Positions 18,476-64,000 of a stretch of DNA of 64,000 nucleotides are shown piece after piece. Under the pieces are notes generated by a model. It was not told the origin of the DNA. It searched no databases and worked only from the letters and a program-made list of their open reading frames with translations. Position 1 is the stretch's first letter. Every line of letters begins with the position of its first letter. The translations under genes and the position numbers were made by a program. This DNA is from Mytilus trossulus (Eukaryota): the NCBI RefSeq assembly GCF_036588685.1, contig NC_086374.1, forward strand, positions 60,884,001 to 60,948,000, read 5' to 3'.

Positions 18476-21400
18476 TCACCGTTCAAAGTTTTGAAATTCT
18501 CCTGGCATATTACTTAGTTCTTTAATGGTTGGGAATTTTTTTGTATCCCTAATTCTTTTAGTCACCGTTATATCTGGTTGAGGTCTAGGGGTCTTAGAAG
18601 ATCTGTGTTTCAAATCAACTGAAAACACTGATAAATTTGCTTCAGACATAACCATATCAATACTAGAAGGTCTCTGAATCGATAACGGTGTTGAAGTTCT
18701 AGGATCATAACTAAAAGAATTGTTAAAACTATTGTCATGAGCTGCTGTTTTAATTGTTCCATTTGTGATTTTATTTTTGCGCATGCTCATTGTTCGACTT
18801 TTTGCTTGAGGGTCATGAACATATTGACTCATTCTACTTTTAGGTGGAAAAATTGATGCTGCCTGACTCATTTTACTGGCTGCTGCTTCTCTATTATATG
18901 CATCTTTATTCGCAGCATCCTTAGCCTTTAACACTGCTATAACACGCAACTCCCTTTCTAAGTTAGTTTTCACTCTGTCGATAACGAGCGCCTGGTTGCG
19001 TTTACGTTCACTGTCTTCACGCATCTGGGTAGCAACTCGACTTTTCATTGTGTCTATTGTCGCTATGGGTGGTTGCGGTTTTGTTACTAATTTAAGCTGT
19101 CCTTCTGGTTCTTGAAACTCAGAGTTTTGTTTCCATTGTTGTAGTTCCATGCTCTGTGGTTGCCCATTCCTGATTGGTTTTACTACAAGTTTAGGCTCTG
19201 TTATTATTTCCTTGTTTACCATGGTATTGGTGTCTGACAAAGTAAACACAGTATGGGCTCCTCTAGGAAGTGTTTTTGGAACTATAAAATCAAAAAATCA
19301 AAAACGATTATATTAATTTATTAATTGGACTTATTCTCTATCTCTAATCTAAGTGGAAAATTTCTAAACATTTTTCATTTGATTAAGCACATACATATAC
19401 ATGTTTTGATTCACTATAATATATAATGTGTTGTACGTATTGACGTTAATGCCTCAACAGCTTTGGTTAAAAATCCTTTTTGAAATATTCATGAAATAGG
19501 AATGAAGATGTTACATCATTCAAGTTGTATAGTTGTATAGTTATTTCTCAAACTGTTTGAAATTTTATTAATTTGCACTAATATTGTGTTAATTTATCTC
19601 TCTTTGGATTGAACACATTTGGGAAAAAGATCTGTTCCATGGCAGTAAATCAGATGCATGAATAAATTTTAAATAAGATAACATTCTAACTAAATGATAA
19701 TAAACTATCGGTTTTGTCATTGGTTTAATTAATATTTTGATTTGAGCGTCACTGATGAGTCTTATGTAGACGAAACGCGCGTCTGGCGTACTAAATTATA
19801 ATCCTGGTACCTTTGATAACTTTTAATACTATTTTGATATAAAATGATTAGATATCATATTGTATTAATCTAATCTAAGATCGCACCAAATTCTGATTTA
19901 AAATACTGTTATCTTTGGTTCGTATGGTCTTCAGAAATATGCGTTTTCAGATATTGTTCTCTTAATTTTTTATTATCTCAGACTTTTTCTATTCCTTCTT
20001 TGCATTAGCCCTTTTACATTTTGACTAACAACAACACATGAATTAATGCTGTCAGTAGTCATCGTGTTGAAATTCCTACTAATTACTTGAAACAATATGT
20101 GACATGGTTAATTGCTAACTCTGATTACATAAATACTGTAGATTTTTTAAAATTAAATATAACAGGGGATTCAATTGGCGTTAGATGCATGCATGACACG
20201 AGCCGATAACCTGTTCTTTTGATTTCATGCGATTCTTCGTTTTATTACGTTAATTATTATCTATTTGATTAACGCATTAATAAGATTTGAACATCGATAA
20301 ACTACTGTTATCTCTAATATATCTAGTGCAATTTACAATTTGCTGTTTGACAAGAGCTTTGAAATTAGCCTATACTTACTGATAATGATTTTCTTTGTGT
20401 GCTTTTTAATATAACTTCTATAACAGCAAATACCAATTACTAGAGCCAGAAATATGATTAACATTAGACTGAAAACTATTGCAAAGATTGCTGCAATTGA
20501 CAGCGGATCATCTGGCGGGGTTACTGGTGCTGAAAGTAGAGATATCAAAATGATGTTCGGGCTGATTCGTCGTTTAACATTCTAAAGGATTGCGGATAAT
20601 TGCTATGTTTGCATACAAATGTGAAAACAAAGTTATGCAATTTGATGACTAGGCTAAACATTGTATCCACAACATATGTTGTACGCTTTTGAAAATATTT
20701 AAAGAAATAACATTGATGTTAAAAAAAATTACATGAATATTGTTTATCAAAGATACCAGACAACATACGACCCATCAATGAGAATCAAAACAGTTCGAGG
20801 TCCAAGTCGAAAACGAAGTTAAAGAGCATAAACCGAAAAGTAAAAACATTTGTAATCAAAGTTAAGAAAAGGTATAGTAATTTTAGAAATAATTATTTTA
20901 AACATAACATTTGGTTTACAAGTTTAATGCAGCATTCAGATATGAACCAATGATCTCGCTAGTTGTCAGTTAAACTAGTATTTTAAATGGTAAGGTAGAA
21001 CTAGAGCGAATTCAAGATATGGACTGCTGTGTCACTGATTTCGACCCATAGCAATTACTAGTAATTGACAACAATATAACTCTTGAGAAAATTTCCGTTG
21101 ATGTGACCAGTTGAGGCCTGTTGTATACAAATTATGTTTGTAAAGTATTCAATCAGGTGCACTGATAGTTTAAAGCAAGTTAATACTCACCACAGGATGC
21201 TGAAAATAGTGTATAATTAGAATTAAAAAGGTATTAATTAAAATGATTAATGAAATGTTTTTTTCTAAACACAAGCAAAACTTGCATCACCATAACCAAG
21301 TACAACATGTATATCATTACGCTTCATGATAGTTTGAACGTTGATTTCCCTTAAAATATAAGCTCGATTGCAAGTAGTCCTGTGATCTTTTCAGAAAAAG

Positions 21401-24400
21401 ACATTTCTAATGTAAATTATGTTCGTGATAAACACTTTATGGCAAGTTTTAAATTTATATGGTTTATGACAGCAATAATGTTAAAATGAACATATCAATT
21501 TCATCAGAGCACAATGGTGGTATTACTACTCATGAAATCTATCGCTAGTACCCTGAATTAAGGCTATGCATTTGCGTGTGCTCTTAAAAAAACAGAAAAC
21601 ACATCCAAAAAGTATTTCGGTATGACACTTAAAAATCATCCTTCATTATAAACCTAAACCTTCGAATTGTTTTGAAAAGTCCTAATATAATTACTGATTA
21701 CTCTGGTAAATGTGTTCATAGGAAGATACCGAAGGGAGACCAACAAAAACATGATAAAAAGAATAATCCAAGAAAAACCAGGGCGATCTTAGGTACATCA
21801 GGAGGACAAACAGATCCTGCTTCTCTATTGGCATTATAGTGTAAGTCTCATTTGGGGATGTTTTAATCTTGGACAATAGGAACGGGATTTAGCTACCACA
21901 ATCAGAACATATATAAAGGCAACATTTGTACATATCTTGGTCATTGAGGCACGGGTATTCCATATTAATTAACATAATCATTATGGCATTCTTTACACTT
22001 TAGATGGGATTGCTTCAACTTTACCACTAAGAGCCTTTGGTTCAATAGCTTCCTTGACAGCAGCAACCAGCTATCAAGGAAAACCAGGAAGGAAAACTAA
22101 AGCTTTGGTGTATCGTGTCAACTGGGAGATGATATTTACTCCCTACACAGGCGCTGATGAAATGTCACTGAAAAGCCTCTGTATAAAGCACAAGTATATA
22201 AATTAAATGAACCGGTCGACATGAAGACGTGACCAGTTGGTACCTACATACATGCCGATTGTCTGTTGAAAACAGGTCATAAAAAACGTAACAAAGGAGT
22301 TGTCAATTAAAAAAAAATAGCATCTTGTTGATATCATTTGTTTTAAATGTAATTAATTATCTGTTTAATGTGTTTGAGCTTTTGATTCTACCATTTGATT
22401 AGGGACTTTTTTTCAAATCAGTATTTTTATGATTTTTCTTTTTATACCAACTTACTGACAGTTGTGAGTTGAAGAAGAGCACCATCTGTAGGAAGAACCG
22501 TCGGACTGGAACCTGATGAACATTTATTTGGACTTTGACTGACCATTGTAATATTGGTATCAAATTCCACCGTCTAAAAATAATAAGAAAAAAATTATTA
22601 GGAATCATATTCTAAGTTTTACATTCATGACACAAAATCAGTATGTGCACAGCAAAAAAACATTGAAAAATAAAAAAAAGTTTTGCTCTATCAAAATCCT
22701 ATTTAGGCCTTAAACACGGAGTATCTCACTGTAAGTGTAAGAAGGCTCTTAGCACAGTTTTATATTTCATTTGGGGGGTGGGGTGAGGGATTTGTAAATA
22801 TTCGAACTTTGATAGGCAATTTTAAATTTCTATTAGGCATTCAACAACCAATACTACAAAATGAAGTACTCTGTGTTTATCATTACCAGTAAATGCGTAT
22901 ATGTAGGTGCGCATGCGAATGATTGTGTATGAACACTCTATTCACTCCATGTAAAGCAATAATATGATAGCAAACAGAATAAAAAAAAATGTCTGATTTA
23001 CTCACAAAACACGTAAATCGCTTTGTAGACGCTCCATTTACAGTAGTATCAAAGTTGTAAACACCTACATAGTAAACACTGGTACTTGTTGTGTCTTGGA
23101 ATGATGTGATACAACCTAATGAACCAGACGCTGGAATGAATAATGATAATTAATTTATTTATAAAAATGTGTGATGAATTTGAATGTTCGTTGTGCTTTT
23201 TTGCTGCTTGGTTTGTTTTGTTTTGTTTTGGTAATTAAGAGTTATCAAATTTTTGCTCAAAAATACAAGAAATAACGTGAGTAAATTCTTGGTAGTGTAG
23301 TAGAGAAGATATTAGCTCAACATAAAATTTCGTAAATATGTCATCAGCTATAAAATTATCTATTAGTGAAAAGAATGAATAACTTTGCTTCATTAAAAGA
23401 GACTAATTTGGTAAGTTACATGTGTGATTTCATAGAGATACTTGTATACCTTCATGTATTTCATACGGATTTGGATCATAGTTTAATAAAGTCAGAGGGG
23501 GGGGGGGCGATAAATGGCTGAATCGTGTTAAGAGAAAGTCTTATATTTGCACGTAAAAGACACCCTTGTAGATTGCGAAAAAGAGCAGGCTAATGCCCCT
23601 AAAAGGCATCACTCGCACCCGCAAAGTGGAAAGAGACCAATATAAGTTGCAATAACTTGTTTCCCAATCTACTATTTATAAATATGTTTAAATAAAAGCT
23701 GAGTTTATGAAAATCTGTGAATCTTTATTTTGAACCATATAAAAAGAGTATTGTTTTCTACTAGGACAATTTTAGACTTTCACTGATAAACTACTCGATC
23801 ATAAATTGCAACTACTAGTACTCTTATGGTAAACTAAAGAGATTTTTTTAAATCATTTTATTTGCTACATTTGTGCGTCAATAAAATAAATACTGGCATT
23901 GTCATACGTTTGCCTCAAATATTCACTGGCGCGGAATGACCAAATGTTGATTCGCATATTGAGTGAAGCATGCATATCAGATGACGCTTATCCTGTCAAA
24001 TCATCAAAAGGTGCCCTTTTTTGGAGTTAATGCGATTTCCTAAGCCTTTATATCCCCTTTAGTGTGTATGCTCTAAACGAATTTATGAGATTAAAACATC
24101 AGTAAACAACTGTTCATTTTATGAATAAACACAATGTGTCTTTTGAACACACGTATTCTTCATACTTCGTCTGATTGCTGCTATGCTGTTTCCTTCGTAA
24201 AAATATTTCAAAAATATCGTAAAATGCATTATACTTTAAAATTAGTCTAAATTCAAACTAATAGAAATTTACAAAAAGGATCTGGTGAACAAAAATACAA
24301 AGAAATCACGGGAAGAAAATATCGTAAAATGCATTATACTTTAAAATTAGTCTAAATTCAAACTAATAGAAATTTACAAAAAGGATCTGGTGAACAAAAA

Positions 24401-27400
24401 TACAAAGAAATCACGGGAAGAAAAACAGACTATACTATATAAAAAATTATTAAAAAAAAACCCAAAAAAACATTATTTAAAAAAAAAAAAAAAAAACATT
24501 ATTTAAAAAAAAAGAACCTAGAAACATGACCCCCACTAAAAAAATAAATAATGTAGACGGAAAGCACAAAAGATATTGATCGTGACTTTTAATGACAAAT
24601 TTTCGATGGGTCAGGCCATACTGGTACTCTCCAATATCTTATGTTGGTTGCATGAAATGACGAAGAAACTATATTTGGTTATCAGATGTGAGTGTATATA
24701 ATGTATAAGGTGAAAAACAGAGTTTCAAGTTCCTTACACGATCTCATCAATCTGAAGAGACAAAAAGGAAGATATTCGATCAGTTATATATTGTAAGACA
24801 TTGTTTTAATTAAAACCTACTAAACATTGTGTTGCATATGAAAAATACAGCTACTTTATACATTTACCTGAATATCCAACGAACTGACTTCCACAGGCAG
24901 TATTATTTAGAGTAATAATAGTTGTATTAGAACATCCTTCCCAGAAAGCAGATACCCCACATTGCGATGAATCGGTTCCAAAGTTCATGGTATAAGTAAA
25001 ATCACCAAGCAAAGGTACAGGAACAGCGCTTAATCCTTCCTTTGCAGAAGCTGTATAATATATAAATAAATAGTACTTCAGGCATACGCACACATTTTAA
25101 CAATTAAAGTATTATTTTATCATATATTTAAAAAAATCATTTTGATATGACGCTTTTGTAGTTCCTATTGACTATTACTGTAGTAGTCTGCTGCTAGGAT
25201 TTTCTCCGTCGTTGAAACAACGTACTGATAATTTTAATAATTGAATATTAATCATAGCTTAATGTTGACCTTAGATGGATTTCGCTCTTCTTTTATGTCT
25301 CTTCCGGTCTTATAGACCTTCAAATGTTTGAGTAGCTATGCATGTTTGGCTTTAAATGTTTTGGGCGTGAAGTTCTGTATAAAGGTAAATACAAAAAAAT
25401 CGCTTTTGAACAAAATTGTATGTTTTTTTCAAATTGAAAGAAATCATTAGTGCATAAGATTGAGAGAGTTTCGTGTCCTTTTTTGTGATTTTGTTCTAAA
25501 TGGAAATGCCGTTCTTAGTCGGGTTTTCAGTCGAAATGATCCAGAAAACCTAGAAATATACTGATTCAGTATGATGAACGTTCGACATAGTATTCTAGTC
25601 TTATTTGTTCAATGCAATTGGAAATATTTAGCATTGATTATCGTTATGCGTATGAAATATTTGGAAAAGAATAGTCTTGTTATGTTTATATGAGTTAAGT
25701 TCTAAACAACTCACCAGGATTTACAAGCATATGGAATTCACCGACGCCTGGTGAAGTATTACACACATCTGCTTCTGTTACAGTTGTAACCGTTGTTGCA
25801 ACGGGGACTACATCGCCAAAATTTAAATTGTCTTGATCACCTGAAATGATATGTCAACGACTTAATCTATATGTATTTTTAACGAACATGTCTTTTATCT
25901 ATTTAAAAATACACGAACATTTTTCAAAGATAACAGTCTTATAATTGATGAGCCAGATGCGCGTTAAGTATATGTCAGACCCGTTAGTAGCACATGAATC
26001 AATACAGAAGAAAGGCCGAATCAAACGCGAAGTTGAAGATCATTAAAAGCAGATACATGTAAATCCCAAAACGGTGACAAAATAGGAGTGTATTCTTATA
26101 TCAATTGGAAGCTTTTAAGAACAAAAATCACTTACTTGATCTGAGGTAATAATAAAATGATGAAGTTGTTAATGATTTTATTTCGAAGCATATCCATACA
26201 TTAACAGTGAAACCACCAAGAATACCTAGCGTGACAGCCTCAACGCTTCTGAAAAATAAAATAAATAGCAGGCATTTATAGGATGCATATCTCTTTGATT
26301 TCAGGTACAGATCCACAAACGTAACGTCTTCAAATAGCTAAAATCATATACGACGTCGGCTTTCCACCCCAGAAAACGTAAGCGTAACAAACACACTGGA
26401 CACGTAGTTTATCACATAATTTTAAAAATAAACGTTCAGCAGGTTTAATTTTTTCCGAACAACAAAGTACAGCAAATGCACATTCTGAAAATCTAAGAAA
26501 ATACATGCTAAGAGCGGTGTAAAAGAAATAAAAAGCGACTATGTCGTAGACCCTTTTCATAAAATAGCGTTAAAACGTCAATTCTTTAAACTGTAACATA
26601 ATCGCTGGACATTTAAAAAAATCAGATGTTCGGCCTTGACTATCGAATCATTCATATTTTGAAGAGTTTTCAAAACCTCTTGTTATGCACATTTGGAATA
26701 TCGAGTCATTTCGAAATAATTTTTTTTAGCAAGTACATATTTATTCACCGATTCTTCCATTTGCTAATATTAATCCTTCCAAATTACTACTTCTTACATA
26801 TAACTAACTAAATTCCAAAGTCAATCACAATGGCCGATTTTGATTTTTTTTAGATGAGGATCGTATGATGTCATAGTCCGAATACGGAAAAAAATATTGT
26901 ATGAAAATGCAGGAATATACGTTGAATTTGTACAAAATTCAGGTCAAAAACTATACTTTATTATTATTTAATGTTACAAGTTACACATATTTTTGCCGTT
27001 TTTTTCATGTTCGTTTCATTCTTTAGAGATTTAATTTTAATAACCTTATTAATTATGTGGATTTGTATAGCTGGCTCTAAACATTTTATCATAAAAAAAA
27101 CTTCCTATTTAAAATATTTGTTTAACACGTTTGTATAAAGCTACTTTTAAAAGCGTATTTTACAGTGGCCGTCAACTCTGTGCACGTCGTCAATATACAT
27201 TCATTGCATTGTCGAAGACCGTGTTTTGGTATCTTAATGTCATTTCTATGTTTGATGAGATTTTCCTTTGCCCTGTATTCCTCATCGTCCTATATCCATA
27301 TTCTTCAAAATAAAATTCATTTGTAACAAACAAACAAAAATAGAATCGTACAAATATGCCATTAAAATGATAAAATATATTATTAACTCATCAAAGATTC

Positions 27401-28669
27401 CAGCCTTATAATGTATGACAGGCGATACATCTACAAAAGACTCAATAAAGAAGCGGAATTTCAAGGATGAGAGAAATATTAAATAAACTTCAATGAGATT
27501 TAGAAGGCTAATAGCACTCCCCCCCCAAAAAAAACCCCAACTAAATTAAAAAAAGCACAATACATCAAAATCCAAAACACAAAACAAGACAAAAATAAAA
27601 ATAATAGCAAACCATTAAACATCAAAAACAAAACATAACAAAAACCACACTATGTACATACATGCAAAGTAACTGTAAGACATTACTGTTCATACATGTA
27701 CAAACACTATGACCTTGTTATATATATATATATACTTACTTTGATACATACATATCTCCATTATTTAGTTGACAAGTAAAGTTTGTATTTGTGAAACCAG
27801 TAACGAATTTTTTCGTCTCCATGTTCATAGAAGAATCTGTAAAGGCGATAGTACCATAAACGCTGTCGTACCATGTTCCTCGTAAGTCACTTGGGTAAGT
27901 ACATAGTCCACCTAAAAACATATAGAAAGGTAAAATAACGTGTCTTTCGCCAAGTAATCAACTTCCAATGAAATGTTTGACAATTGGTTATCTGAACTAG
28001 CTAGGAGTTTAATGAGAGGAAAACATGTCAAAGATTTTTCAATTTGATGTTAAAAGTAGATTTTTATATAGATTTAAGTGGCATGTTTATGACTTTCGAA
28101 CAGTGGTATACTACTGTTGACTTAATGTGTACTGTTGTTTATTGCGGTATGTTATATTTGTTTTTCGTTAGTCCTTAGGTCATTAATAAGACCGTTGTTT
28201 CTATTGTTTTGTTCATGTCGAGTCCTTTTTAAAGCTGCTTATACGGTATGAGTGTTGCTCAATGTTAACGTCTTTTCGGTGACTTATAGTTGCTAACCTC
28301 AACGTAATTTTTGTCTCTGATTCAAATTTGTTTTATTTGAAATCAATCAACATCACCTTATTTAAAATATTTATCAATTTTGAATACTGTCCATTCATAA
28401 CAGAAAACATAACTTTCATTGTTTTGTGAGTCGTTAAGGGAGTTTTTTGCTTTTATTAGTGATGTTACATAAGAAGTTATGGTTTTTCTGGTACCAGCGT
28501 CAATCTTGTGATAATTTAATTTGATGCGACATGTCTTTTAAGTTGCAACAGCAAACGAATTATCTGAAACAGCTTATATTTATTATGAAACAAAACATTC
28601 AAAATACTTACAACTTTGATGTATTAACAGGAACAATCCATAAATCAGTCTTACGTCAAGTACCACCAT
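18476..28669 (-). CDS. Gene A: uncharacterised single-pass type-I membrane protein with a Cys-rich ectodomain (619 aa, 10 exons)
   Basis: Exons 28669-28612, 27911-27740, 26248-26136, 25840-25715, 25050-24868, 23130-23006, 22573-22456, 21199-21191, 20529-20380, 19281-18476. All introns are GT-AG, with phases 1,2,1,1,1,0,1,1,1, giving 1860 nt open. Signal peptide MVVLDVRLIYGLFLLIHQSCG; ectodomain LCTYPSDLRGTWYD...RFTCF; TM IAAIFAIVFSLMLIIFLALVIGICCY followed by basic residues. Confidence 0.9.
19744..19790 (+). ncRNA. Solo minimal hammerhead ribozyme in the last intron of gene A (antisense to A)
   Basis: GAGCGTCA CTGATGA GTCT TATGT AGAC GAAA C GCGC GTC^TGGCGTA. Confidence 0.85.
21191..21199 (-). 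CDS. 9-nt microexon of gene A (T-S-C)
   Basis: TATTTTCAG|CATCCTGTG|GTGAGT, phase 1-1, with a CTAAT branch-like motif upstream. Confidence 0.85.
23505..23692 (+). mobile_element. 5'-truncated copy of the tRNA-SINE
   Basis: Similar to the reverse complement of 340-530. Confidence 0.75.
24211..24424. repeat. Perfect 105-bp tandem duplication (intronic)
   Basis: AAAATATCGTAAAATGC...CACGGGAAG starts at 24211 and again at 24316. Confidence 0.9.
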
Positions 28670-29947
28670 TTTGATCCATCAGAAATATTCCAAAGATTAA
28701 AATAACATGTAACATTTTTTCTTCATTTTGATAATTTACAAAAGGATGGTTATTTAAACCTATGGCAAAAACCTGCCATTGAAATTAACAATTTTAGATA
28801 ATTTTTCGCATGTTTTATTGTTTAAACAAAAGACAAGATTTTAAATTTGTAACTTAATATTGCATGTGTTATTTTACCATTGTTCATGTTTAGTATCTAT
28901 GTGTTGATATTAACAACCGGATTAATTACCTACAAATTAAAAGTCGTAAAAATAATTTCATTTTTTAAACACCAAGTATTTAAATATGAATATCATAAAA
29001 GAGAGGTTGTTAAATAGACCAATAGAATGTATATTCATTTCAATTGAAGGGTCGACATTTTGTTTGGCAAAAATGTAGACGAATTTCTAAGGAATATATT
29101 GAAAGATGTGTAAAAATAATTGGATGGCTCGAGTTTTTAATTATTGACACTGTTTGTAACAATTCATCAATGCGATAGCATTTCACAACACATTCAAACC
29201 AAAAACAAACATATGATTTTATTACTCAAACATTGAAAACATTCACTACACTTTAAAAAGTAAAACAAATTTCATTTTGACATTTTTTTATATGAGCGCT
29301 TACTGTTAAGTCCAAAATTGGTGTTTTGTACAAACACTTCTCATCTTCTAGTGCTTAGATGCACCAGACTCTTTCCTTTTATGTACCTCGTCCTTAAAAA
29401 AGAACTTAACTTACGATTTGTAAGTTTCAAATCACTTAGTAAATAAATAAATTTTAATTTGGTAAAATTAAATAGGTAAATTAAAAAGCAAGACCGAACG
29501 GAAAAAGAATGGAAGAAAGAAACTGATAAATAAATAACCATAACAGAAAGAAAGTAAATAAGCAAATTGAAAATATAAATATTTTCAGTATTCACACTTG
29601 TTTCCTATATGAATGTTGTTTTAGTAAGAGCACACTTGTATTACTAAATTAGAATAAAAACATATTGAGAGAGAATATAGATAAATATCATAAGAAAAAA
29701 CAAGGGAAAGTTATGGGACAAACTGTATGGAAACCAATGAAATCTTTAAACATTCGATTAACATCTACACAGTCAAAGCATTTAACGTAAGTCTTATTCC
29801 GTACCCGTGACCCCATGAAATCGTTGAATATCACTTACGTTCCTTTTCGTTTGTGTTAAACAAATAAGCTAAATCATTCAATGAGTTTTATTGTAACACT
29901 AACTTCTAAATAGTAATGGTGGAAAGGACATTATAAACATTACACAA
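28670..29947. promoter_or_regulatory. Candidate bidirectional promoter between head-to-head genes A and B
   Basis: The start codons diverge 1278 bp apart and no obvious TE lies between them. The TSS cannot be determined from sequence. Confidence 0.5.
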
Positions 29948-44183: not shown

Positions 44184-44353
44184 TTTAGAGAGAGAGCCAT
44201 ATCTCTTGCACGTCAAAGACACCCTTGTAGATTTCGAAAATGAGCAAGGCTAATGCCGCTACAAGGCAGTACTCGTACCCACAAAGAGGAAAGGGATTAA
44301 TACAAGTTGAAAAACTTTTTTTTCCAATCCACTATAAATAAATATGTTTAAAC
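44184..44353 (+). mobile_element. 5'-truncated tRNA-SINE copy with an 8-bp TSD
   Basis: Similar to the 338-683 element. TAAAAGTG at 44176-44183 and 44354-44361. Confidence 0.78.
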
Positions 44354-44954
44354 TAAAAGTGAAGTCTGTAAGACAAAAATGATGCCTCACAACAGGCTCT
44401 ATATGCTCCATTTCTAACAGTAAAAATACAGATTCTTAATAAATAGTAGTATACGTCTGTTCAAAAGTCAAAAATTGATCCAACTGAAAAAATCCGGGTC
44501 AAAACCAAAAACCGTGGGAAACACATCTATTTTAAGAGGAAAATAACGTTACAACAGAAACACGTAACTGTTATAAAAACAAACACCAACATACATAGAA
44601 ACGGACTCTTTGATAACACATGGAATATTCCTGACTTCGTACAGGACGTTATAAATAAAAATGATGACTTGAATCTGGATTTGTTAATAGCTTAAACTGA
44701 GTGGTCTTGACATCCTATCAGTATGAGATATTGAGTTGGTAATCATACCGTCACAAATTATTTCAATGTTCATATAGATCGATCAGACATGATTGAATTA
44801 AATTGATGATACATTTTTTAAGTTGTGTCCATGGAGGAAGTGATTTTGTTGCATTGGTTTCTTCTTTTCTGTGATTGGAAGAATTGCACATATATTATAA
44901 TTGAACTGCATCATCAATTTATCACCCAACTTAACTAGCTTGTTGGTGTAACCT

Positions 44955-52200: not shown

Positions 52201-55200
52201 TAAAAGAATTGCTACACAACTCTTTATAACAATATCAAAAGATAACATTTTTATTTACCTTTAAAAACAAAAGGGCATGGACGTTTTTACCTAGGAATAT
52301 TAATGACACGGACATGACTTCCTAGGAAAATTAGTCTGTGGACATACATTTTATAAAAAATATAAATACAAAACTCATAAGTTTCCATTGTTTTAACGTA
52401 AATGATTTCATTCATTAATATTTTTCCTATAAAGAGGACATGGACGTGTTTACCTAGGAATATTAATGACATGGACTAGAATACCTAGGAAAATTAGTCA
52501 GAGGACATAAATTACTTACATCGGACAAAAAAATACAAGTAAATTTTGTAACCATGGACTTTTTCTACTAGTTATATGTGTCCGCCCAGACATATTTTAC
52601 CAGGACAAATTTATCTCTTACAAAGGTACTGATTTCAACACGGGATCTTGGCTCACACCGAACAACAAGCTATAAAGGGCCCCTAGATATTAAGTGTAAC
52701 ACCATTTAAACGGAAAAACCAACGGTATAATCTATAAAAAAAACCGAGAAACGAGAAACATATATAAATTACATACTACTGTACTGAAAACTAATGTACA
52801 TCAGATTCCTGATTTAGGACAAATGCAAACATTTGCAGCGGGATTAAACATTTTAATGGTACCAAACCTTCTCCCTTTTACTGAGACAATTATAGTATAA
52901 CATCACAACATAGAAAAACACACGATAAAATATCAATTGAAAGGCTTAACTCAATTCAAAAACGTAAATTAACACTCTATGAACGATTTAATTTGAGATG
53001 TTTGCTTGATGTATACACAACATTCCCTGTTACTATGCAGTTTCTCGTTTCACTAGATACTATCAGGGACAACAATCTATAAAATCTTAAATTACGTTTC
53101 AGTACCTACATTTGTTAAACTTACTTTCGTGAAATTTTCACGCCTTTCTCAAAAAATGAAAAGAAAAATAAACAAGCAAAAACTCAAACAAAAACAACAA
53201 CAAAAAACACTAAAAGAACCTGAAAAAAAACCAACAACAATAAAACAAAAAACTTCACTACTGTATTCATGCAATAATGTAACTGCCAAAAGTATAATCA
53301 TTTCTTATCAAAAAGATGTTTTCAATGAAAGTTAAGTAATGTTCATATATATTTTGTAGCTGAAGGAAGAATTGGTTGTGTTGCCACTATAGATGATGGC
53401 TCAGGCACTCTATACACATCGCTGTATAATTATGATGCCAGTGTAAATGGGTTAACTACTTTTAGATTTACATGCGCTGTACGTAAGATCATAGATTAAA
53501 CACGACACGTTTCAATTTAATGTACATTTCCTGAAATAAAAATAAATGTGCAAAATTCAAAAATAAAGAAATAGAAAGAAATCTTCTGCATGACCAAAGA
53601 ACTGTAATGTGTATGCATAAATGAATAGGAACTGATTTCTCTTTCAGTAACACTTGTCAAATTGAGACCACCTTCGGTTTATTTTGTGGAGTATTTAATT
53701 TTATATGTAGAATTTTATGGACTATTTATGGTAGTTTTTTCGTCGTTTTAGAAAAGGATAGAAAGATGTAACATGTACTGAAATAATAAATTAATTTGAA
53801 AGATATTTGCTATTGTCAATTACCTCCAGCACATCTAAATATTAATGTAAGTAATATTTTTCTACTGAAGGCTGTTCAGGGTGTGACGTCAGGAGATGTA
53901 CAAGTTAGTTATGCGAAGAAACGATGTGATGCCGATCAGCCTTACAGCTCTAGACCTCCTGATGGTGCTCTACTGACACTCACGCCTAACGGTAAGGTCA
54001 GCAACTCTTATCCGATATGAAAATCACAGAAGTTGTTAATTGAGAGGTCTAGATCGCTAGAATTCTGTATGAAAAAAGAAGACTTGGTACGATTTCGAAT
54101 CAGACAACTCTCCACCAAATGACATAGAAGTAAACAATTAAAGGTCATCGTACGGCCTTCAACAATGATTTGACCCCATACCGCAATAAAGGTATGGGTC
54201 TGACAAAAGTATAACAATTTAAACGAGAAAACTAACGACGTGATTTATGTACAAAACAATGTACGATAACAATTTTTTTTAAATGAAACAACAAACGACA
54301 ACCACAGTCTCTATCATAATAACTTGTGACATGCACATCTAGAATTACACTAGGTTACTGTCTCTAAATCCTCAATATAACTGGGACAGTGGTGTGAATG
54401 TTCATAAGTACATAATAGCAATACTTAGTTTGTTGGTGCATAGTAATATCCGAAATACAAGTAAACATGCTCCTGTGAAGTTGACTTAAAGACACAAGGA
54501 ACCGCAGTGCATTGTGGACTACTTCGCGTTAATAAAGCCTACGTAGGATTACATAATAGCACATAGAATATGGTTCAAAAGAGTCATTTTGTGTTGAGTA
54601 TATGTCGGAAACTCATCTACGTAATATAAAACATAAAATATATTTATCAAATTCTTCAACTGATATGCGCAGATTTAAAGTACATTTTTCCTCAGTTTCC
54701 ACATTTGAGTTTGTTTTTGTCATGTCAAAGTAGTATTAAAAGAGCAGATTTTATTATATGAGATAGACCGGTGCATTAATATCAAGTGAAATGAAAACGC
54801 ATTGACCATTCCAGTAAAACTCATTTGAACCCTTAAAACCTAGTAAACATATTTTAATGTATAGAATTATTTATTTGATACTGAATGATCTATAAATGTT
54901 CGTATCATGTAAAGATACGTCTTTTCAAAATCGGTGCTCTTTCAAGAAACACGGAGAAGAATACGGCATCGAAATCTTCATTGATATCAAATATTACAGC
55001 CAGCGTTTTGTATGAAAATGACATATGGTTTATCTGCGATGAGTAATTGACTTTTTGGTTATATCTGTTTTAAAATGATTACATTTGAATTAGTATTCAT
55101 TATTCTGAATAATTCGTAGGGCTTTTTTTTTCAAATTTTGAGAATGGATTTACGCTTAAACAATGATAGAGCAATGTTCAGGGCGTGTGATAACACAATA

Positions 55201-58200
55201 ATTTCTATAAAGGGCAGACAACATTTAAGCTTTACTTTTTTAGGGCATAATTCCACCTTGCCTAACGGCTCTGGAAATTTGTACCTCTCAACCGGCAAAT
55301 ACCCCTTGTAAGCATGATATATTTGTATAAAATCTTTTTGTGGACTTTCATTAACCTTTGGAATAACAGATGTAGGTTTCAAAATATAAAATCTATGTTG
55401 TGTCAAAATGAAAAAAAAATTTGTTAATTTAAAAATGGAAGTTGTTTTGTGATTTCCAATTAAAAACTCCCCAACAGAGATAAACTGACGTACACGTAAA
55501 TAAACAAGTCACTGCATGGCCTTCAATAATTAGCAAAATCTATACCACACAGAGAGTTATAGAAGGTCCCGAAATGTTAAATGAAACGCAATTCAAATCA
55601 GAAAACTAATGGCCTGATTTATGATGATAAACAGCAACAAAAACAACCAGTGAATTGTCGACTGATTAATTTATAACTTTTTATTTCAAAAGAGGTTCAC
55701 ATTTGAATTAAATTTTGATAAATTACGATTAAACATCTATAAAAACAGACGAAAGTGAAACACAAGTTTGGCTTTTCCTTATCTTCATATATTTGGCTTC
55801 CTTTCATTTTTAGCTTTGCCAGCAATCAATGATTTAAAAAACATTTTTTTTTCAACTTTGGCCTCACGAAGATATAGAAACGCCAGCAGGTCAGACACAA
55901 ATAAACATGTATTTGACATTTGTATACATAAAAAATGACCTGAATAATGTCACATATCAATCATTACTTAACACTTCAAACAATTATATATCTCTGTATG
56001 GATATGTTAAAATGGAGATACTTATTATAAGGAGGTGAAAACTTGACGCAACAAATGAACAAAACAAAACAAAACAAAAGATCGTTGTGACTTAGAGTTC
56101 TTTTAACGACACCCAAAAATGTTAATACTATATCTATGATAGAAAAATTTCTGTTACAGGTACTTGTGGTGAGTAAATTAAAAAAAAAAATCTTACTACC
56201 TTTTTATGTTAAGAAAACTGTTACTTTTTTGTAATTTATCAGAAATGGTTGTTTCTATTATTCCATATTATCAACATTACTACAGCGTAAAAATATTACT
56301 AACAAATATGCTAACAGTCAGTTTCAAAATCTAAAAAAGTGAAGATCTGCTTTTTAAAAAAACAATATTTAAGCCAAGTTGTGAAGCAACAAAGCCGACA
56401 TAAGATATGTTAAATGCAGTTCGACCGAACAATAGTACATATAACATAGTAACAAACCCGACATAAGATATGTTAAATGCAGTTCGACCGAACAATAGTA
56501 CATATACATAGTAACAAATCCGACATAAGATATGTTAAATGCAGTTCGACCGAACAATAGTACATATACATAGTAACAAATCCGACATAAGATATGTTAA
56601 ATGCAGTTCGACCAAACAATAGTACATATTACATAGATATGTTAAATGTAGTTCGACCGAACACTAGTACATATTACATAGATATGTTAAATGTAGTTCG
56701 ACCGAACAATAGTACATATTAAATAGATATGTTAAATGCAGTTCGACCGAACAATAGTACATTTACATAGTAACAAACCCGACATAAGATATGTTAAATG
56801 CAGTTCGACCAAACAATAGTACATATACATAGTAACAAATCCGACATTAGATATGTTAAATGCAGTTCGACCAAACAATAGTACATATAACATAGATATG
56901 TTAAATGCAGTTCGACCGAACAATAGTACATAAACATAGTAACAAACCCGACATAAGATATGTTAAATGCAGTTCGACCAAACAATAGTACATATTACAT
57001 AGATATGTTAAACGTAGTTCGACCGAACAATATTACATATTACATAGATATGTTAAATGCAGTTCGACCGAACAATAGTACATATTACATAGATATGTTA
57101 AATGTAGTTCGACCGAACAATAGTACATATTACATAGATATGTTAAATGCAGTTCGACCGAACAATGGTACATATTACATAGATATGTTAAATGCAGTTC
57201 GACCGAACAATAGTACATATTACATAGATATGTTAAATGTAGTTCGACCGAACAATAGTACATATTACATAGATATGTTAAATGTAGTTCGACTGAACAA
57301 TAGTACATATTACATAGATATGTTAAATGCAGTTCGACCGAACAATAGTACATATTACATAGTAACAAACCCGACATAAGATATGTTAAATGCAGTTCGA
57401 CCGAACAATAGTACATATACATAGTAACAAACCCGATATAAGATATGTTAAATGCAGTTCGACCAAACAATAGTACATATTACATAGATATGTTAAATGT
57501 AGTTCGACCGAACAATAGTACATATTACATAGATATGTTAAATGCAGTTCGACCGAACAATAGTACATATTACATAGATATGTTAAATGCAGTTCGACCG
57601 AACAATAGTACATATTACAAAGATATGTTAAATGTAGTTCGACCGAACAATAGTACATATTACATAGATATGTTAAATGCAGTTCGACCGAACAATAGTA
57701 CATATTACATAGATATGTTAAATGCAGTTCGACCAAACAATAGTACATATTACATAGATATGTTAAATGCAGTTATACCGAACAATTATCTTACATATTA
57801 CATAGATATGTTAAATGCAGTTCGACCGAACAATAGTACATATTACATAGATATGTTAAATATAGTTCGACCGAACAATAGTACATATTACATAGATATG
57901 TTAAATGCAGTTCGACCGAACAATAGTACATATTACATAGATATGTTAAATGCAGTTCGACCGAACAATAGTACATATTACATAGATATGTTAAATGCAG
58001 TTCGACCGAACACTAGTACATATTACATAGATATGTTAAATGCAGTTCGACCGAACAATAGTACATATTACATAGATATGTTAAATGTAGTTCGACCGAA
58101 CAATAGTACATATTACATCGATATGTTAGTTGCAGTTCAACCGAACAATAGTACATATTTCATAGATTTGTTAAATGCAGTTATACCGAACAATTATCTT

Positions 58201-61200
58201 ACATATTACATAGATATGTTAAATGCAGTTATACCGAACAATTAGCTTACATATTACATAGATATGTTAAATGCAGTTCGACCGAACAATAGTACATATT
58301 ACATAGATATGTTAAATATAGTTCGACCGAACAATAGTACATATTACATAGATATGTTAAATGCAGTTCGACCGAACAATAGTACATATTACATAGATAT
58401 GTTAAATGCAGTTCGACCGAACAATAGTACATATTACATAGATATGTTAAATGCAGTTCGACCGAACACTAGTACATATTACATAGATATGTTAAATGCA
58501 GTTCAACCTAACAATAGTACATATTTCATAGATTTGTTAAATGCAGTTCGACCGAACAATAGTACATAGTACATAGATATGTTAGTTGCAGTTCAACCGA
58601 AAAATAGTTCATATTTCATAGATTTGTTAAATGCAGTTCGACCGAACAATAGTACATAGTACATAGATATGTTAAATGCAGTTCGACCGAACAATAGTAC
58701 ATATTACATAGATATGTTTAATGCAGTTCGACCGAACAATAGTACATATTACATAGATATGTTAAATGCAGTTCGACCGAACAATAGTACATATTACATA
58801 GATATGTTAAATGCAGTTCGACCGAACAATAGTACATATTACATAGATATGTTAAATGCAGTTCGACCAATCAATAGTACATATTACATAGATATTTTAC
58901 ATTGTGTCATCTTTTAAAAAGGCGTATAATAGATAATGTCTCTTGAAAATAAAAAGACCACATTATCTATTTGAATACACACTCTCCCTTGACACTATTT
59001 GCGAGTATGGTCTTGAGGAAACGACGATCGTCCGTCGGAAGGGGACGATAAATGGCTGACCCGTATTCAGAGAAAGTCATATCGCTTGCACATTAAAGAA
59101 ACCCTTGTAGATTTCGAAAAAGAGCACGCTAATGCCGCTACAAAGCAGCACTCGCACCGCAAAGTGGAAAGGGATTAATATAAGTTTCAATACTTTGTTT
59201 CCCAATCCACAATGTTTTGCAATTATCTTCCTCTACTTTTTTATGAACTCTTTATCACTAATTTTGTACCATTAAAAGCTTTCTTTACAAAAAAAATATT
59301 AATAAAATTGAGAAAGGAAATGGTGAATGTGTCAAAGCGACAACAACCCGACCATAGAGCTGACAACAACAAAAATATTAAGACTATTTTTTTTTTAATT
59401 TAGAAACAACAACAACGACAGAGGAAGCAACAACAACTGAGGAAATAACAACTGAAAATGACGAAACAACAACGGAGACATCTACAACAACAACAGAATC
59501 ACCAATACCCATTCTAACAACCGATAGTGTTAATGTTGGTGCAATTATTGGAGGAGTACTAGGAGCCATATTATTTATAATTCTTTTGTTGTTACTGGTT
59601 CTGTACTGCATTCATAGACATAAGGTTGTTGCTAAGCAACGGGCCATCATCGACCGAAGACTTAAGTTGTTCAAGATAAAACAAGCTCAAGGATTAGGTG
59701 AGTTACACAGCATATGTTCGAAAATGTATAGTTATGTTTACTGGTCTTGATTTAGGACAGGCACATACAGAATGTGGCTAAACAACATGTTGTTCATGTC
59801 TGACATCCATAACCTTCTCTAAATGCATAGACAAATGCATGAAATATGTTTTCAATAAAATTCAAATAATTAATCAGACATAATCATTTCATATACTTAC
59901 GACCTTTGCTTCTTTTAGCTTAGTCTGTTTGGAAATTTGGATATTCATTTCATACTATTATGTTGTATATAAGTAATGTTATATGATTGTTTGATATTGG
60001 TGCACCAACGGTATTAGCTTATATTATACTTCATCTACGTTGCTTTTTCATATTTATATTGATCTTTTTCGCCAGTTTGTCTGCAGTGTCAAAATGTATA
60101 GGTGTTTATCATATTGTGTGTTAGCATTAATTTTTAGTGTTTTCTTCAACAATAGTGTCATTGCCTATGTCATTTGCAACATTTAAAAAAAGTGTTAAAA
60201 GTTTTCACAACCATGTTAAGTGCTTTTAAGATTTTTTCATCTTCCACTTGTATAATAATCTGTTGGATGTAATTATGCTTTTAGAGAAAACTGGTTTAAA
60301 TGACTATAAAAGTCTTTTAAGTAATCTTTCTAGAAAGTATTTATTTACGACTTTGTAATTTTGTTACCAAATTTCTTTGTTTTTAATATTATTTCCAGGT
60401 TTTGTTAGTCTGAGTTTTATTCCAATTTATATCTCAATATATGTGGTATAGAGCTTTTCTCTATTCTTTTTTCATTTATGATAGCGAGTTTTGTTTTCTG
60501 TACTTCATGGGTGCATGTAAATCTATCTCATCAGAGACCTGAGTTTCCAAATCATCATATACCGAGTTTAAATCATCTAAACATTTATTTGCATCATGTT
60601 AAAAAATATAATATTATTATCAATATCATTAATCACATTCAGTGCTTGTTGTTTTTTTCTGTTTCGTATCGATCTAATGAGTAAAGCCTTTTCAATTCAA
60701 CTGATTTTTATACTTGTTTTAATGTTATAATGTTAAACCACTGTCCCAAGTTTAAAAGAGGGACGAAAGATACCAAAGGGACAGTCGTACTCATAAATCT
60801 AAAACAAACTGAAAACGCCATGGCTAAAAATGAAAAAGAAAAACAGAAAAACAATAGTACACATGACACAACATAGAAAACTAAAGAATAAACAACACGA
60901 ACCCCATGATTAAAGTTGGAGGTGGCCTTCGAAGATATTTAACCCTGATACAGTATGGTGTGCCTGTCTCAAGTCAAGAGCCTGTATTCAAGTAGTTGCA
61001 TGTCGTTGTGTCATGTCTGTCACATATGTTAGTCTTATAATGATTTATTGAAGGATTTATTGCTAGTGTTTAATGTAACTTTTGTCGTGACGGTCAATTT
61101 GAATTGTTGCAGGAAGCCTGAGTGTTTGGAGAGAATCTCCGACCTGGGGTAGGATAACTGATAATTCTTGTCAATTACTACCTGAGTGGTTCAACTCACA

Positions 61201-64000
61201 ACCTCAGTGTCGACAGACTAGTAATACAGAATTAAACTATAGCCACATACACCACTCGGTCACCGAGTCCTTGCGTATGCACATTCGATAAATAATAATC
61301 ACAGAACACTGTCATGTACACCTATCTTAACAACTTCTGTCGTCTTATTTATTGATTTTTCTTCAAACATTTTTGTCAATAATGGGATATATTACGTCTT
61401 CTCTGTGGTTTATGAAAGAATTAAAATATTTTTGAATATTTCAGACGATGATGACAGGATTCTTAATGAACCATCGTTAGACCCTGATTTTCCACATTAC
61501 TGGGAAGCACCTAAGCAAGAACTTATACCACCCGTTGAAAAGAAAAGTATTACAAAGGGTAGGATAATTTGCTGTAGCTTATATGTTTTTAAAGAATTTT
61601 AATTGTTTGATTTTAAACGCCAATGAATCAAAATTATTGTGTTATATTCAATAAATGTTTAATTCATTAAATGTTATTGACTTTAAATAACATCAAGCTG
61701 AAATACAAGGGTGTTGTTTGGTTTATGGAAATTCGGTCCGTTGGTATGCCTCCACAATAAGTTCCACACGAGAAACGTTAACTGACCTAGAAGGCCTAGT
61801 ACGTGTCTATTGAGAGTAAGTTGGAAAACAAAATGCTCTATCTGTTAATTGTTTTTAAAGTCAACATGTTGTTGTTGTTGCTAATAATAATAATAGTATC
61901 TGACAAAATGGTTCTACATTACAAAGGAAACAAGTCTATCTTTGCTCTATTCCTGAAGTTTCACATTTTGACCCAGCCATTTCGTCTTTCATCGTTTTCC
62001 TTAAATTAATTGCTGTACTTTCGGTAGCTAGACGGTGCTGTTTGACATTTAAGACTAAGACATATGGCTTAGAATTGAACGGTAGCACTGTTCATACGCA
62101 AAAATACAGTTTATCAAACCCAACCACATGTTGCGCATGTGCTATGTGACGATATATGTACTCATGCTTTGTTCGATGTTGCTTGTATATTTTGGACGTC
62201 TTTTTTCTTGTATGGAACGATTAACCGTGGCTTGTGTAGTCGACCACTTTTAGTAGTTCACGATATTTTGTTTTCTAAGTTAGTGTTTTGTAATAACATA
62301 TAACCAAAACTGCCATTGTAACTGAAATACTGACGAAATTATATCCTAAAACTCATTGACATAATTGAAATATTGTAATAATACGATTACTTATAGTATC
62401 TAAATATTAGTGATACACAGTCCACACAAGGGAAATTGACTTAGAAATGCATAAATTATTAGAACTGAACTCTTCCTGAATATTAAGTTAAGTAATATTT
62501 ATAATGAACTCTGTTTCAATGTAGGTCATGTAAATTTTAGTGGAATTGTATTACTGTACTGAACGAAATAATGATTTTCAGATATGATGTCACAAACAGA
62601 ACTTCAGAAAGAACGAAAGAAAATCATTCCTCAATTACCCGAACCTCAAACACCGACGCCAAAATATCTCCCGTGGCCGTGGCGAACAGCTAAGAGAGCT
62701 TCAAATAAATCTGCTTTTCAGTCACAAACAGATTTGCGAAAATTTGGACCAATTCCGGAAACTACCAAAGAATGTGTAGATTTGGCTGATTATACAGTTT
62801 CCAAGTACGGGCTTAGATATGATGATACTGGTGTTGATGGTGTAAATGACAAAATATCTAGACCACCAACAAGATTCATGCCAATATCTAACTCTGAGAG
62901 AAATATGTCTCGATCGAGAACAACTATATTATCTAGGTCAGGCTCTGTTGCATCACTGCACAGATCACAATCATTGTTTGACTTGCAAACTCCAACGCCA
63001 AGGAGAATACAGTTGTCAAGAGCATCATCACTGAAATCCCTAGTTACAGAACGAACACAAACACATGTGCTTATGTCGATAAAGGAAAAGAAAGTTAACT
63101 ATAAGAAAGAAATACCATCGATTATAAAGAAAAACGACACATCTGTCAGACCTGTGCCTCACTACATGTTCCCAATACGATCCAATTCATTGACTAAATT
63201 TGAAAAGGCACAATTCCAAAATCCACTTGCACAACCATTACGTCGGTCATATACTCTGTTGAGACCAATGCCTAATAGAAACCACAAAGTTGAGAACATT
63301 GAAGTTCGGAAAAAAACAAAGAAGAAGAAAATGAATAAGAAAAAGAAGAGTCCATACACAATTATTCCAACTCCTGTGCGACAAATAACACTCATTCCGC
63401 TTACTCGAAAAAACGTCACGAACAACAAAGTGAGACCATTGAAATCAAAGCCGAAAAGCAGACCACCAAAAACCACTGAAACAAATTTTGTAGTAGAAAG
63501 TCCGTCTACTAAATCACCAAAGACTACTGAAAGTATATTTACTCAAAGTCCAGGTAAAATATTTTAAATGATTTTGTCTCATTTCAAGGAAAAAATAAGC
63601 ATAATTATATAAACAATAACTAATTTCAATAGGATTATTTTAATCAATTTATTTGTTAACAGGAACGACCGCTCACAAACTAAGTGAAATTTTTAAAAGC
63701 TTTTCTCTTAATTTTGTTTCTGAGCCTTTGTTTCAAGACTAAGCTAAGTTTACATTATTTTTTTAAAAAACAGTGTTTTGTATCTGAACATTGTTTGTTG
63801 CTATTTCTGCGTCATGTCCCCTTAAATTTTTAGGTTTTTGTACTTCATAGTCAATTAAAAAAAAGAGAGAATATGGTTGAATATTATTATTCTCGCTATA
63901 ACAACAAACCAGTAAAAAAAAATCTTGCTGTTCTTTATCTATTACTTGTTTTATTTGCGGTCATTGTATTTCAGATACTATTATTTCAACTGTCAACACA
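46233..64000 (+). CDS. Gene C: third paralogue, closest to gene B; 3' end probably beyond the window
   Basis: Exons 46233-46287, 47686-47863, 48285-48385, 49454-49582, 51020-51196, 53360-53478, 53871-53991, 56160-56168, 59404-59697, 61445-61558, 62582-63553, and a possible next exon from 63975. Same phases as B. TM VGAIIGGVLGAILFIILLLLLVLYCI. Read-through of exon 11 stops at 63567. Confidence 0.87.
48439..48862. mobile_element. PIF/Harbinger-type MITE
   Basis: Perfect 16-bp TIR AGCCCCAGTCACACTG / CAGTGTGACTGGGGCT, 3-bp TSD TTA (48436-48438 and 48863-48865), interior rich in CTACGTTT motifs. Confidence 0.88.
51344..52622. mobile_element. Ginger-like non-autonomous element (TGT...ACA, 4-bp TSD) nested in another dispersed repeat
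   Basis: Imperfect TIR TGTAACAGTAAATTTG / CAAATTTATCTCTTACA. TSD AAGG (51340-51343 and 52623-52626). Internal ~150-180-bp repeats with CCTAGGAAAATTAGTCTG. The host repeat (~51261-52960) resembles 54080-54300 and 55450-55650. Confidence 0.75.
56160..56168 (+). CDS. 9-nt microexon of gene C (G-T-C)
   Basis: CTGTTACAG|GTACTTGTG|GTGAGT. Confidence 0.87.
56385..58895. repeat. Intronic minisatellite, ~50 units of 45 bp with 61-62-bp variants
   Basis: Unit GATATGTTAAATGCAGTTCGACCGAACAATAGTACATATTACATA. The long variant adds GTAACAAACCCGACATAA. Confidence 0.97.
58982..59210 (+). mobile_element. Headless copy of the tRNA-SINE
   Basis: Similar to the reverse complement of ~360-587. Confidence 0.78.
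61050..61270 (-). mobile_element. Decayed second SINE family (tRNA-like head, Meta/V-like core)
   Basis: The minus strand starts GGACTCGGTGACCGAGTGGT (A-box-like) and contains GTTGTGAGTTGAACC (B-box-like). The plus strand shows GGAAGCCTGAGTG...GGAGAGAATCTCCGACCT. Confidence 0.5.

Follow-up and report, generated by a model that had tools for sequence, protein, structure and literature searches.

Three tandem DUF7042-family genes of Mytilus trossulus with a predicted two-barrel ectodomain, stalks of different length and two types of cytoplasmic tail

APCDD1 is a single-pass membrane protein with two barrels and 12 disulfide-bonded cysteines, one of whose bonds is interdomain, and it binds lipid and WNT7A (PMC10193966). 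Among molluscs, and apparently among arthropods too, proteins of the DUF7042 type make up a sizeable extracellular family, for which our literature search found no published function. Here we describe three tandem multi-exon paralogues, genes A, B and C, in a 64,000-nucleotide window of the Mytilus trossulus genome (NC_086374.1, positions 60,884,001–60,948,000, forward strand; AT-rich, ~31% GC, no N). The genes are new members of the already catalogued, functionally uncharacterized DUF7042 family. Our full reading, which we consider somewhat probable, is that they encode type I membrane glycoproteins with a double calycin barrel, a variable stalk and a motif-bearing disordered tail.

Genes A (18476–28669, minus strand) and B (30577–42769, plus strand) lie head to head; C is 3′ of B, begins at 46233 on the plus strand and extends past the window end. 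In an all-against-all comparison of the window's open frames, matching short frames are collinear across the three loci, with exon-wise blastp expectation values (E) of 1e-10 to 1e-26 for B–C and 1e-4 to 1e-11 for A–B. Ectodomain identity, taken exon-wise, is 58% for B/C and 30–32% for A/B and A/C. A, B and C are three paralogous genes, expressed or conserved. Numbering in B is shifted by one, its first two exons apparently being fused, so the shared exon 5 is B exon 4 (34538–34720). The exons, with the basis for each (handles beginning with P are public predicted proteins), are:

28612–28669, minus: A exon 1, signal peptide, donor phase 1 (scan for ATG, hydrophobic run and phase-1 GT; agrees with the M. 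edulis P0159 N-terminus)
27740–27911, minus: A exon 2, barrel 1 start, C..P..L.G.W and FTC (paralogue match; weak DUF7043, E 0.029)
26136–26248, minus: A exon 3, WIC (paralogue match, motif)
25715–25840, minus: A exon 4, EF...V (paralogue match, motif)
24868–25050, minus: A exon 5, DUF7042 start, without the first domain Cys (paralogue match, Pfam scan)
23006–23130, minus: A exon 6, G.LGC and YNFD..VN....RFTC, donor phase 0 (paralogue match, motifs)
22456–22573, minus: A exon 7, DUF7042 end (paralogue match, motifs)
21191–21199, minus: A 9-nt micro-exon, T-S-C (AG/GT-flanked candidate; TSC in M. edulis P0159)
20380–20529, minus: A stalk (~10 residues) and transmembrane exon (RefSeq P0153 joins it directly to the tail exon)
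18476–19281, minus: A last exon, cytoplasmic tail, stop at 18476 (96–97% identity to M. galloprovincialis LOC143063892)
30577–30836, plus: B exon 1, signal peptide and barrel 1 start in a single frame (DUF7044, E 0.0035)
31826–31926, plus: B exon 2 (paralogue match, motifs)
32634–32762, plus: B exon 3 (paralogue match; an RNA loose end maps to 32731–32760)
34538–34720, plus: B exon 4, DUF7042 start (25 bits; RNA joint 34720 to 35392, four runs)
35392–35513, plus: B exon 5 (RNA joint to 35897)
35897–36020, plus: B exon 6 (RNA contigs)
36281–36289, plus: B 9-nt micro-exon, G-T-C (RNA X1 and X6; exact AG/GTACATGTG/GT inside the intron)
37306–37578, plus: B Thr-rich stalk and transmembrane exon (RNA contigs)
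38251–38358, plus: B juxtamembrane acidic exon (RNA joints 37578 to 38251 and 38358 to 38995)
38995–40236, plus: B large tail exon, donor 40236 (RNA contigs, public orthologues)
40906–41037, plus: B tail exon 11 (tblastn of P0001; an RNA loose end equals 40906–40935)
42588–42769, plus: B last exon, DSGISADESS ... RPWR, stop (tblastn of P0001)
46233–46287, plus: C exon 1, signal peptide (scan; agrees with the M. coruscus P0009 N-terminus)
47686–47863, plus: C exon 2 (paralogue match, motifs, Pfam scan)
48285–48385, plus: C exon 3 (paralogue match, motifs)
49454–49582, plus: C exon 4 (paralogue match, motifs)
51020–51196, plus: C exon 5, DUF7042 (32.9 bits alone, above the 27-bit cut-off)
53360–53478, plus: C exon 6 (paralogue match, motifs, Pfam scan)
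53871–53991, plus: C exon 7 (paralogue match, motifs)
56160–56168, plus: C candidate 9-nt micro-exon, G-T-C (AG/GT; with flanks, identical to the B micro-exon at 16 of 20 letters)
59404–59697, plus: C Thr/Glu-rich stalk and transmembrane exon (in P0004 and P0151)
61445–61558, plus: C juxtamembrane exon (P0004)
62582–63553, plus: C large tail exon, the gene continuing past the window (P0004, P0151)

All introns are GT–AG and share positions and phases (2,1,1,1,0,1,1,1 after exon 2), and the concatenated exons read through with zero internal stops. The A model has 10 exons and 619 residues, the B model 12 exons and 954 residues (coding sequence 2865 nt) and the C model at least 11 exons, with 756 residues inside the window. 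The B signal peptide (ATG 30577) is in one open frame with the first ectodomain exon, and intron 1 seems to be absent from this gene; exon 1 of C (46233–46287) and of A (28669–28612) came from a signal-peptide/donor scan and agree with M. coruscus and M. edulis N-termini. Nothing in gene A corresponds to B/C exon 9; RefSeq P0153 joins the transmembrane exon straight to the tail exon. The large B tail exon closes at the donor at 40236, not at the open reading frame (ORF) stop at 40259; the two exons that follow (40906–41037 and 42588–42769) end in ...RPWR. The 3′ exons of this kind in C fall outside the window, where P0004 and P0151 add ~130 residues ending in PWR. The original prediction, made from the letters of the window, was right in its three loci and their paralogy, and its gene models were incomplete: the micro-exon and two 3′ B exons had been missed, and C is cut at the window end. 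Its claim of identical intron phases holds after exon 2, with the lack of exon 9 in A and, apparently, of intron 1 in B as departures. Two candidates in A were dropped: an 'exon 9' at 20085–20038, because P0153 joins the neighbouring exons directly, and an alternative exon 1 at 28715–28667, since 28669–28612 agrees with P0159.

Seventeen RNA runs share 5–14% of sequence words with the B locus, and Logan contigs (not reads) from four runs of four studies were placed on 34500–40300, that is, B exons 4–10. One low-depth intronic contig aside, the contigs lie on exons and skip introns exactly at the predicted sites. The joints are 34720 to 35392 and 37578 to 38251 (four runs each), 35513 to 35897, 38358 to 38995, and 36020 through nine letters to 37306. 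Loose ends reach beyond this region: the sequence before 34536 leads to 32731–32760, the end of B exon 3, and that behind 40236 equals 40906–40935 in exon 11. Eight B junctions are supported by spliced RNA contigs from the four runs, and the junctions of A and C have as their basis homology and predicted proteins of other species. Contigs X6 (2,959 nt) and X1 (1,264 nt) run from ectodomain exons through the stalk and transmembrane exon into the tail, and therefore the ectodomain, membrane span and tail of B occur in one mRNA. Indels between contigs and window exons are all in frame (3 nt in exon 6, 6 nt within the Thr stalk).

Both X1 and X6 carry nine extra letters between 36020 and 37306, and the identical 9-mer is found in the window at 36281–36289, flanked by AG and GT. 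The micro-exon supplies x-T/S-Cys before the stalk/transmembrane exon in all three genes (G-T-C in B and C, T-S-C in A). Relatives in Haliotis, oyster and Solemya carry a Cys at this position, directly before the stalk. Public models of the orthologues (P0153 for A; P0001 and P0002 for B; P0004 for C) begin in or just before the exon 3′ of the micro-exon, and two non-RefSeq models omit the micro-exon, one of these omitting the transmembrane exon too. This suggests that the 9-nt micro-exon breaks automated gene models. Predicted proteins of these genes are already present in public Mytilus databases, often truncated at the micro-exon, and the lesson for annotation is that a conserved 9-nt exon coincides with the truncation point of the RefSeq models of all three genes.

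Several sequences inside or beside the genes were also recorded. A low-depth 212-nt contig (run X1) lies at 36660–36871, in the B intron between micro-exon and stalk exon, and may reflect unspliced pre-mRNA or hint at an internal start. A repeat at 38380–38767, also in a B intron, shows numerous loose ends and a very high summed RNA contig depth (up to ~3,800); copies related to it lie at 1437–1676, 8666–8842, 15075–15251 and 44424–44543, and it is probably an abundant transcribed transposable element. The C intron between micro-exon and stalk exon holds a minisatellite (56585–58899; 45-bp unit, ~51 copies, 84% match), which accounts for the long repetitive frames in the ORF list. At gene A, a 5.8-kb tandem duplicate (8206–13965 versus 14620–20395, 98.2% identity, offset ~6.4 kb) takes in the last 16 nt of the transmembrane exon, the intron, the entire tail exon and the 3′ flank, so that a second, identical 257-residue A-tail ORF lies at 12046–12819 within it. 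This could be a genuine partial-gene duplication or two haplotypes assembled in tandem.

Family membership was established from Pfam scans, run exon by exon on the window genes, with full-length scores taken from public orthologues (DUF7042, PF23069; gathering cut-off 27 bits). Exon 5 alone scores 32.9 bits in C, 25.0 in B and 13.9 in A; the orthologues P0009 (C type) and P0010 (A type) score 53.8 and 36.3 bits (positions 3–114 of 123), and 41 of the 42 aligned relatives match. The DUF7042 pattern CP..L.G.F.YT ... C ... C ... C ... GxxxC ... RFTC ... C is present in the alignments. B and C have the complete Cys set of the domain; A lacks its first Cys and has an extra one at the exon 1/2 junction instead. 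Half-domain exons of the N-terminal domain score 18 bits (B counterpart of exon 2, DUF7044), 15.1 bits (C exon 2, DUF7044) and 15.1 bits (A exon 2, DUF7043), the best relative, P0080, reaching 23.3 bits; at E up to 10, 13 and 7 of the 42 relatives match DUF7043 and DUF7044, respectively. Every ectodomain motif listed in the original prediction was found in A, B and C, and its suggestion of a DUF7042/DUF7044-type pattern proved correct. Its description of the genes as orphans has to be given up: the family is in Pfam, and relatives occur in bivalves and gastropods.

A profile built from the exon-5 peptides of A, B and C matched 126 proteins at E up to 1e-3 among 1.84 billion representatives. 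The 20 of these that were looked up by name are molluscan, save one bacterial repeat protein that matches a short part of the profile. Named relatives come from Mytilus species, Magallana, Pecten, Mizuhopecten, Tegillarca, Solemya, unionids, Haliotis, Lottia and Nucella, and are labelled 'uncharacterized' or 'DUF7042 domain-containing' (the latter in Mytilus, Potamilus, Lottia and Mizuhopecten). Relatives built in the same way, with signal peptide, ~290-residue ectodomain, Cys, short Thr/Pro stalk, transmembrane segment and long unrelated tail, are present in Haliotis, Magallana, Solemya and Nucella. Neighbouring Atlas clusters are of DUF7042/7043/7044 and carry mostly arthropod and mollusc labels. 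Multi-EGF and tandem-module extracellular proteins (P0014, P0012) contain DUF7042 as well. This genome has at least 16 exon-5 loci, mostly on contig C14, with A, B and C alone in the present cluster. The proposal of an expanded, uncharacterized family of single-pass type I receptor-like proteins is supported. For the synteny with DHX9 that the original prediction had suggested following, neither this gene nor another coding ORF was seen among the open frames of window positions 1–6300, as judged by frame inspection only.

Between Mytilus species, ectodomain identity is 88–96%. LOC143063894 of M. galloprovincialis shares 92% identity with the large B tail exon, and a M. californianus protein with the RefSeq name 'rho GTPase-activating protein gacO-like' shares 86%; the C tail matches M. 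californianus LOC127728069, and the A tail shows 97% identity to LOC143063892 as well as to M. edulis models. The M. galloprovincialis protein P0152 is a chimeric prediction, with the B tail followed by the C ectodomain and transmembrane segment; therefore the B-then-C order is conserved in that species and annotation fused the neighbours. Elsewhere in the M. trossulus genome, equal-score family exons pair between contigs C26 and C14 (C26:563950 with C14:39876983; C26:576463 with C14:39890355), pointing to C26 as an alternative haplotype of part of C14 or a recent duplicate of it. An intronless 692-residue member at C8:32.93 Mb (minus strand; L001:1747–3825) has a signal-peptide-like N-terminus and a hydrophobic C-terminus, matches DUF7043 (E 1e-12) and weakly DUF7044, and scores 39.6 bits for DUF7042 by six-frame search, a match unlisted by whole-ORF hmmscan; its Cys-rich linker is ShK-like by eye.

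The mature ectodomain of each gene, ~280 residues long, has 12 Cys, counting that of the micro-exon. AlphaFold2 modelling of the A orthologue P0010 (307 residues, exons 2–7, folded without the micro-exon Cys; 42-sequence alignment) yielded an all-β structure of two domains (predicted local distance difference test score, pLDDT, 89.8; predicted template modelling score 0.85). Foldseek with the whole model returned low-scoring two-domain look-alikes alone, by template modelling score (MoaF, single-chain streptavidin and TbpB). Aligned per domain, residues 150–284 (barrel 2, DUF7042) match calycin barrels at Z 5.5–8.9: Tp0751 at 8.7–8.8, the Bacteroides lipocalin-like 4qrl at 8.1, and nitrophorin 4, LTBP1, FABPs and avidin at 5.6–6.7. 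The second APCDD1 barrel of mouse (ABD2) aligns at Z 6.0–6.7 over 116–117 residues, among the longest aligned stretches listed. Barrel 1 (residues 10–142) is lipocalin-like, with Z up to 6.5 (3hty). A search of the PDB with the family profile matched chains at stalk, transmembrane and juxtamembrane parts alone. The ectodomain is thus predicted to consist of two calycin (lipocalin-like) β-barrels, the first DUF7043/7044-like and the second DUF7042, which answers the structural check that the original prediction had proposed.

Each gene has a signal-peptide-like N-terminus or exon 1 and a hydrophobic 21-mer (mean hydropathy 2.7–3.2) followed by K/R-rich sequence; judged by signal peptide, one hydrophobic helix and basic residues on the cytoplasmic side, A, B and C read as type I single-pass proteins. 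The stalk between the micro-exon Cys and the hydrophobic segment is ~10 residues in A (APVTPPDDPL), ~45 Thr-rich residues in B and ~42 Thr/Glu-rich residues in C, in line with the lengths first proposed. Sub-threshold, compositional Pfam matches link the B stalk/transmembrane exon to TMEM154, glycophorin A and endomucin.

In the B and C tails, 23–27% of the residues are hydrophobic, and S, T, P and K are abundant. In an AlphaFold2 model of the transmembrane segment and tail of a B orthologue (pLDDT 43.8), the transmembrane helix alone is confident (pLDDT 87–91), and the B tail is predicted to be mostly disordered. Alignment of 10 B/C-type tails, sequences of 30–46% identity included, reveals invariant islands amid variable sequence: PKYLPWPWRTAKRAS; PKY(L/M)PWPWRTAKRAS; LA(D/N)YT.xKYG..YDD.G (LADYT.SKYG..YDDTG); PHY..PIR..S (PHYMFPIRSNS); NPL; and SPY. 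In Mytilus, DSGISADESSL and the C-terminal PWR are invariant too. The A tail lacks the B/C islands, and its best match to the B/C tails (E 4.1) is not significant, in line with the little similarity noticed at the outset. Pfam scans of the tails gave no match, and no TIR, death or immunoreceptor tyrosine-based activation motif (ITAM)-like domains.

How such proteins might work can be sketched from this layout of signal peptide, ~280-residue 12-Cys double barrel, micro-exon Cys, stalk, one transmembrane helix with basic residues, and long tail. By analogy with calycins and APCDD1, the extracellular ligand of the barrels would most plausibly be a small molecule, hydrophobic or lipid-modified, that sits in the barrel pocket; alternatively, a protein or glycan ligand may be bound on the barrel loops. 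The Thr/Pro-rich stalk is presumably O-glycosylated and would set the reach of the ectodomain, and short linear motifs in the tail would recruit cytoplasmic partners, giving two outputs, one of B/C type and one of A type. Similar sensors would then connect to different partners and stand at different distances from the membrane. The original picture of related binding domains held at different heights is a reasonable hypothesis; ligand type, signalling and glycosylation are inferred.

Several points weigh against this reading. Fold scores of Z 6–9 lie in the range that the tool calls common for barrels and show a common barrel fold, not a specific relative. The N-terminal domain is under the Pfam thresholds (15–23 bits versus 27), and the tail alignment used for folding was shallow (10 sequences). 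RNA support is restricted to B exons 4–10, with A and C taken from homology and other species' predicted proteins. A full-text literature search (DUF names, Pfam accessions, gene and protein ids) found no paper on family members, and because no experiment or paper was found on any of them, function rests on fold analogy. RefSeq orthologue models start at the stalk/transmembrane exon, without the ectodomain, and one M. coruscus model skips the transmembrane exon; tail-only or transmembrane-less isoforms are possible. These same starts (P0001 and P0002 for B, P0004 for C, P0153 for A), the ectodomain-only protein P0010 and the short unspliced contig at 36660–36871 would also fit each locus being two genes, a secreted double-barrel protein (exons 1–7) and a separate small membrane protein of stalk, transmembrane segment and tail. 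We regard this as highly improbable: X6 and X1, which come from different studies and organisms, join B exon 6/7, micro-exon, transmembrane segment and tail; M. edulis P0159 (A) and M. galloprovincialis P0151 (C) join the ectodomain to the transmembrane segment and tail; the Haliotis, oyster and Solemya relatives are continuous type I proteins; and the truncated models start after a 9-nt micro-exon, a feature that aligners would commonly miss. An adhesive or immune-recognition role, with barrel loops binding proteins or glycans, the mucin stalk as a spacer or anti-adhesive element and the expansion serving pathogen or self/non-self recognition, appears unlikely. It would suit the expansion of the family, the occurrence of DUF7042 in multi-EGF and tandem-module proteins, the variation in stalk length between paralogues and the in-frame stalk indel between RNA contigs and window. 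The top fold match, Tp0751, is a lipocalin-fold surface protein that acts as an adhesin. However, the tails lack the immune Pfam domains named above, the ectodomain is conserved between Mytilus species and not hypervariable, and no expression data link the family to infection.

Kinship with APCDD1, the only characterized protein of this general design, was considered separately. Two predicted barrels, 12 Cys and a transmembrane helix are APCDD1-type features, and the common layout extends to the signal peptide and to one Cys near each end of the ectodomain; ABD2 aligns with barrel 2, and an APCDD1 cluster is a low-scoring Atlas neighbour (0.75, where a score under 0.9 is a lead only). Yet none of the 42 relatives matches APCDDC (PF14921) at E up to 10, and when the family profile was compared by hhalign with both domain exons of APCDD1 from the mussel itself, the probability was 0.1%. 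A PDB search with the profile returned no APCDD1 chain, and unrelated lipocalins reach Z scores at least as high. A true APCDD1 gene is present elsewhere in the mussel genome (C6:1.456–1.463 Mb, each APCDDC domain in one large exon, 167 and 77 bits). APCDD1 homology was therefore rejected as a basis for membership, given the lack of APCDDC matches and the hhalign result, and kept as an analogy of fold and layout. That the ectodomain is a remote APCDD1 homologue acting as a lipid- or WNT-palmitoleate-binding feedback inhibitor is very doubtful. Also quite unlikely is a looser version, in which the ectodomain would be the invertebrate counterpart of APCDD1, by remote kinship or convergence: a six-disulfide calycin-barrel pair whose micro-exon Cys closes an N-to-C interdomain bond at the membrane, capturing WNTs or hydrophobic signals, presented on stalks of ~10 versus ~45 residues and coupled to two tails. 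We prefer the reading as DUF7042 membrane glycoproteins with a double calycin barrel.

For that family, the locus contributes full-length models (RNA-supported for B), a confident fold prediction of two calycin-like barrels on a membrane anchor, and invariant tail motifs usable as bait. Should the barrels, like those of APCDD1, bind lipids or lipidated signals, these proteins would represent a new class of lipid sensors on invertebrate cell surfaces; if not, they are an ordinary lineage-expanded surface-protein family. Their closest kin are the DUF7042, DUF7043 (PF23070) and DUF7044 (PF23071) proteins: barrel 2 (exons 5–7) matches ~110 of 123 DUF7042 positions in orthologues with the same Cys pattern, and barrel 1 weakly matches DUF7043/DUF7044. 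The A/B/C subfamily adds the micro-exon Cys, a mucin-like stalk, a transmembrane helix and very long tails, whereas other members are secreted, multi-module or EGF-linked. With the lipocalin, FABP and avidin calycins, both domains share a predicted antiparallel barrel topology, but at 5–15% identity, and the mussel proteins are tandem, predicted disulfide-rich and membrane-anchored barrels. Mucin-type single-pass proteins (TMEM154, glycophorin A, endomucin, MUC15) resemble B in the Thr-rich stalk, transmembrane helix and basic juxtamembrane region; they lack a folded Cys-rich ectodomain, and the B matches to them are compositional and below cut-offs. APCDD1 (mouse ectodomain, 8e0p/8e0r; PMC10193966) shares the type I single-pass form, the ectodomain of two β-barrels and the 12 Cys, the structural alignment being of barrel 2 alone to ABD2; it differs in its short cytoplasmic tail, in having no mucin stalk, and in the α-helix/loop insert carried by its barrels.

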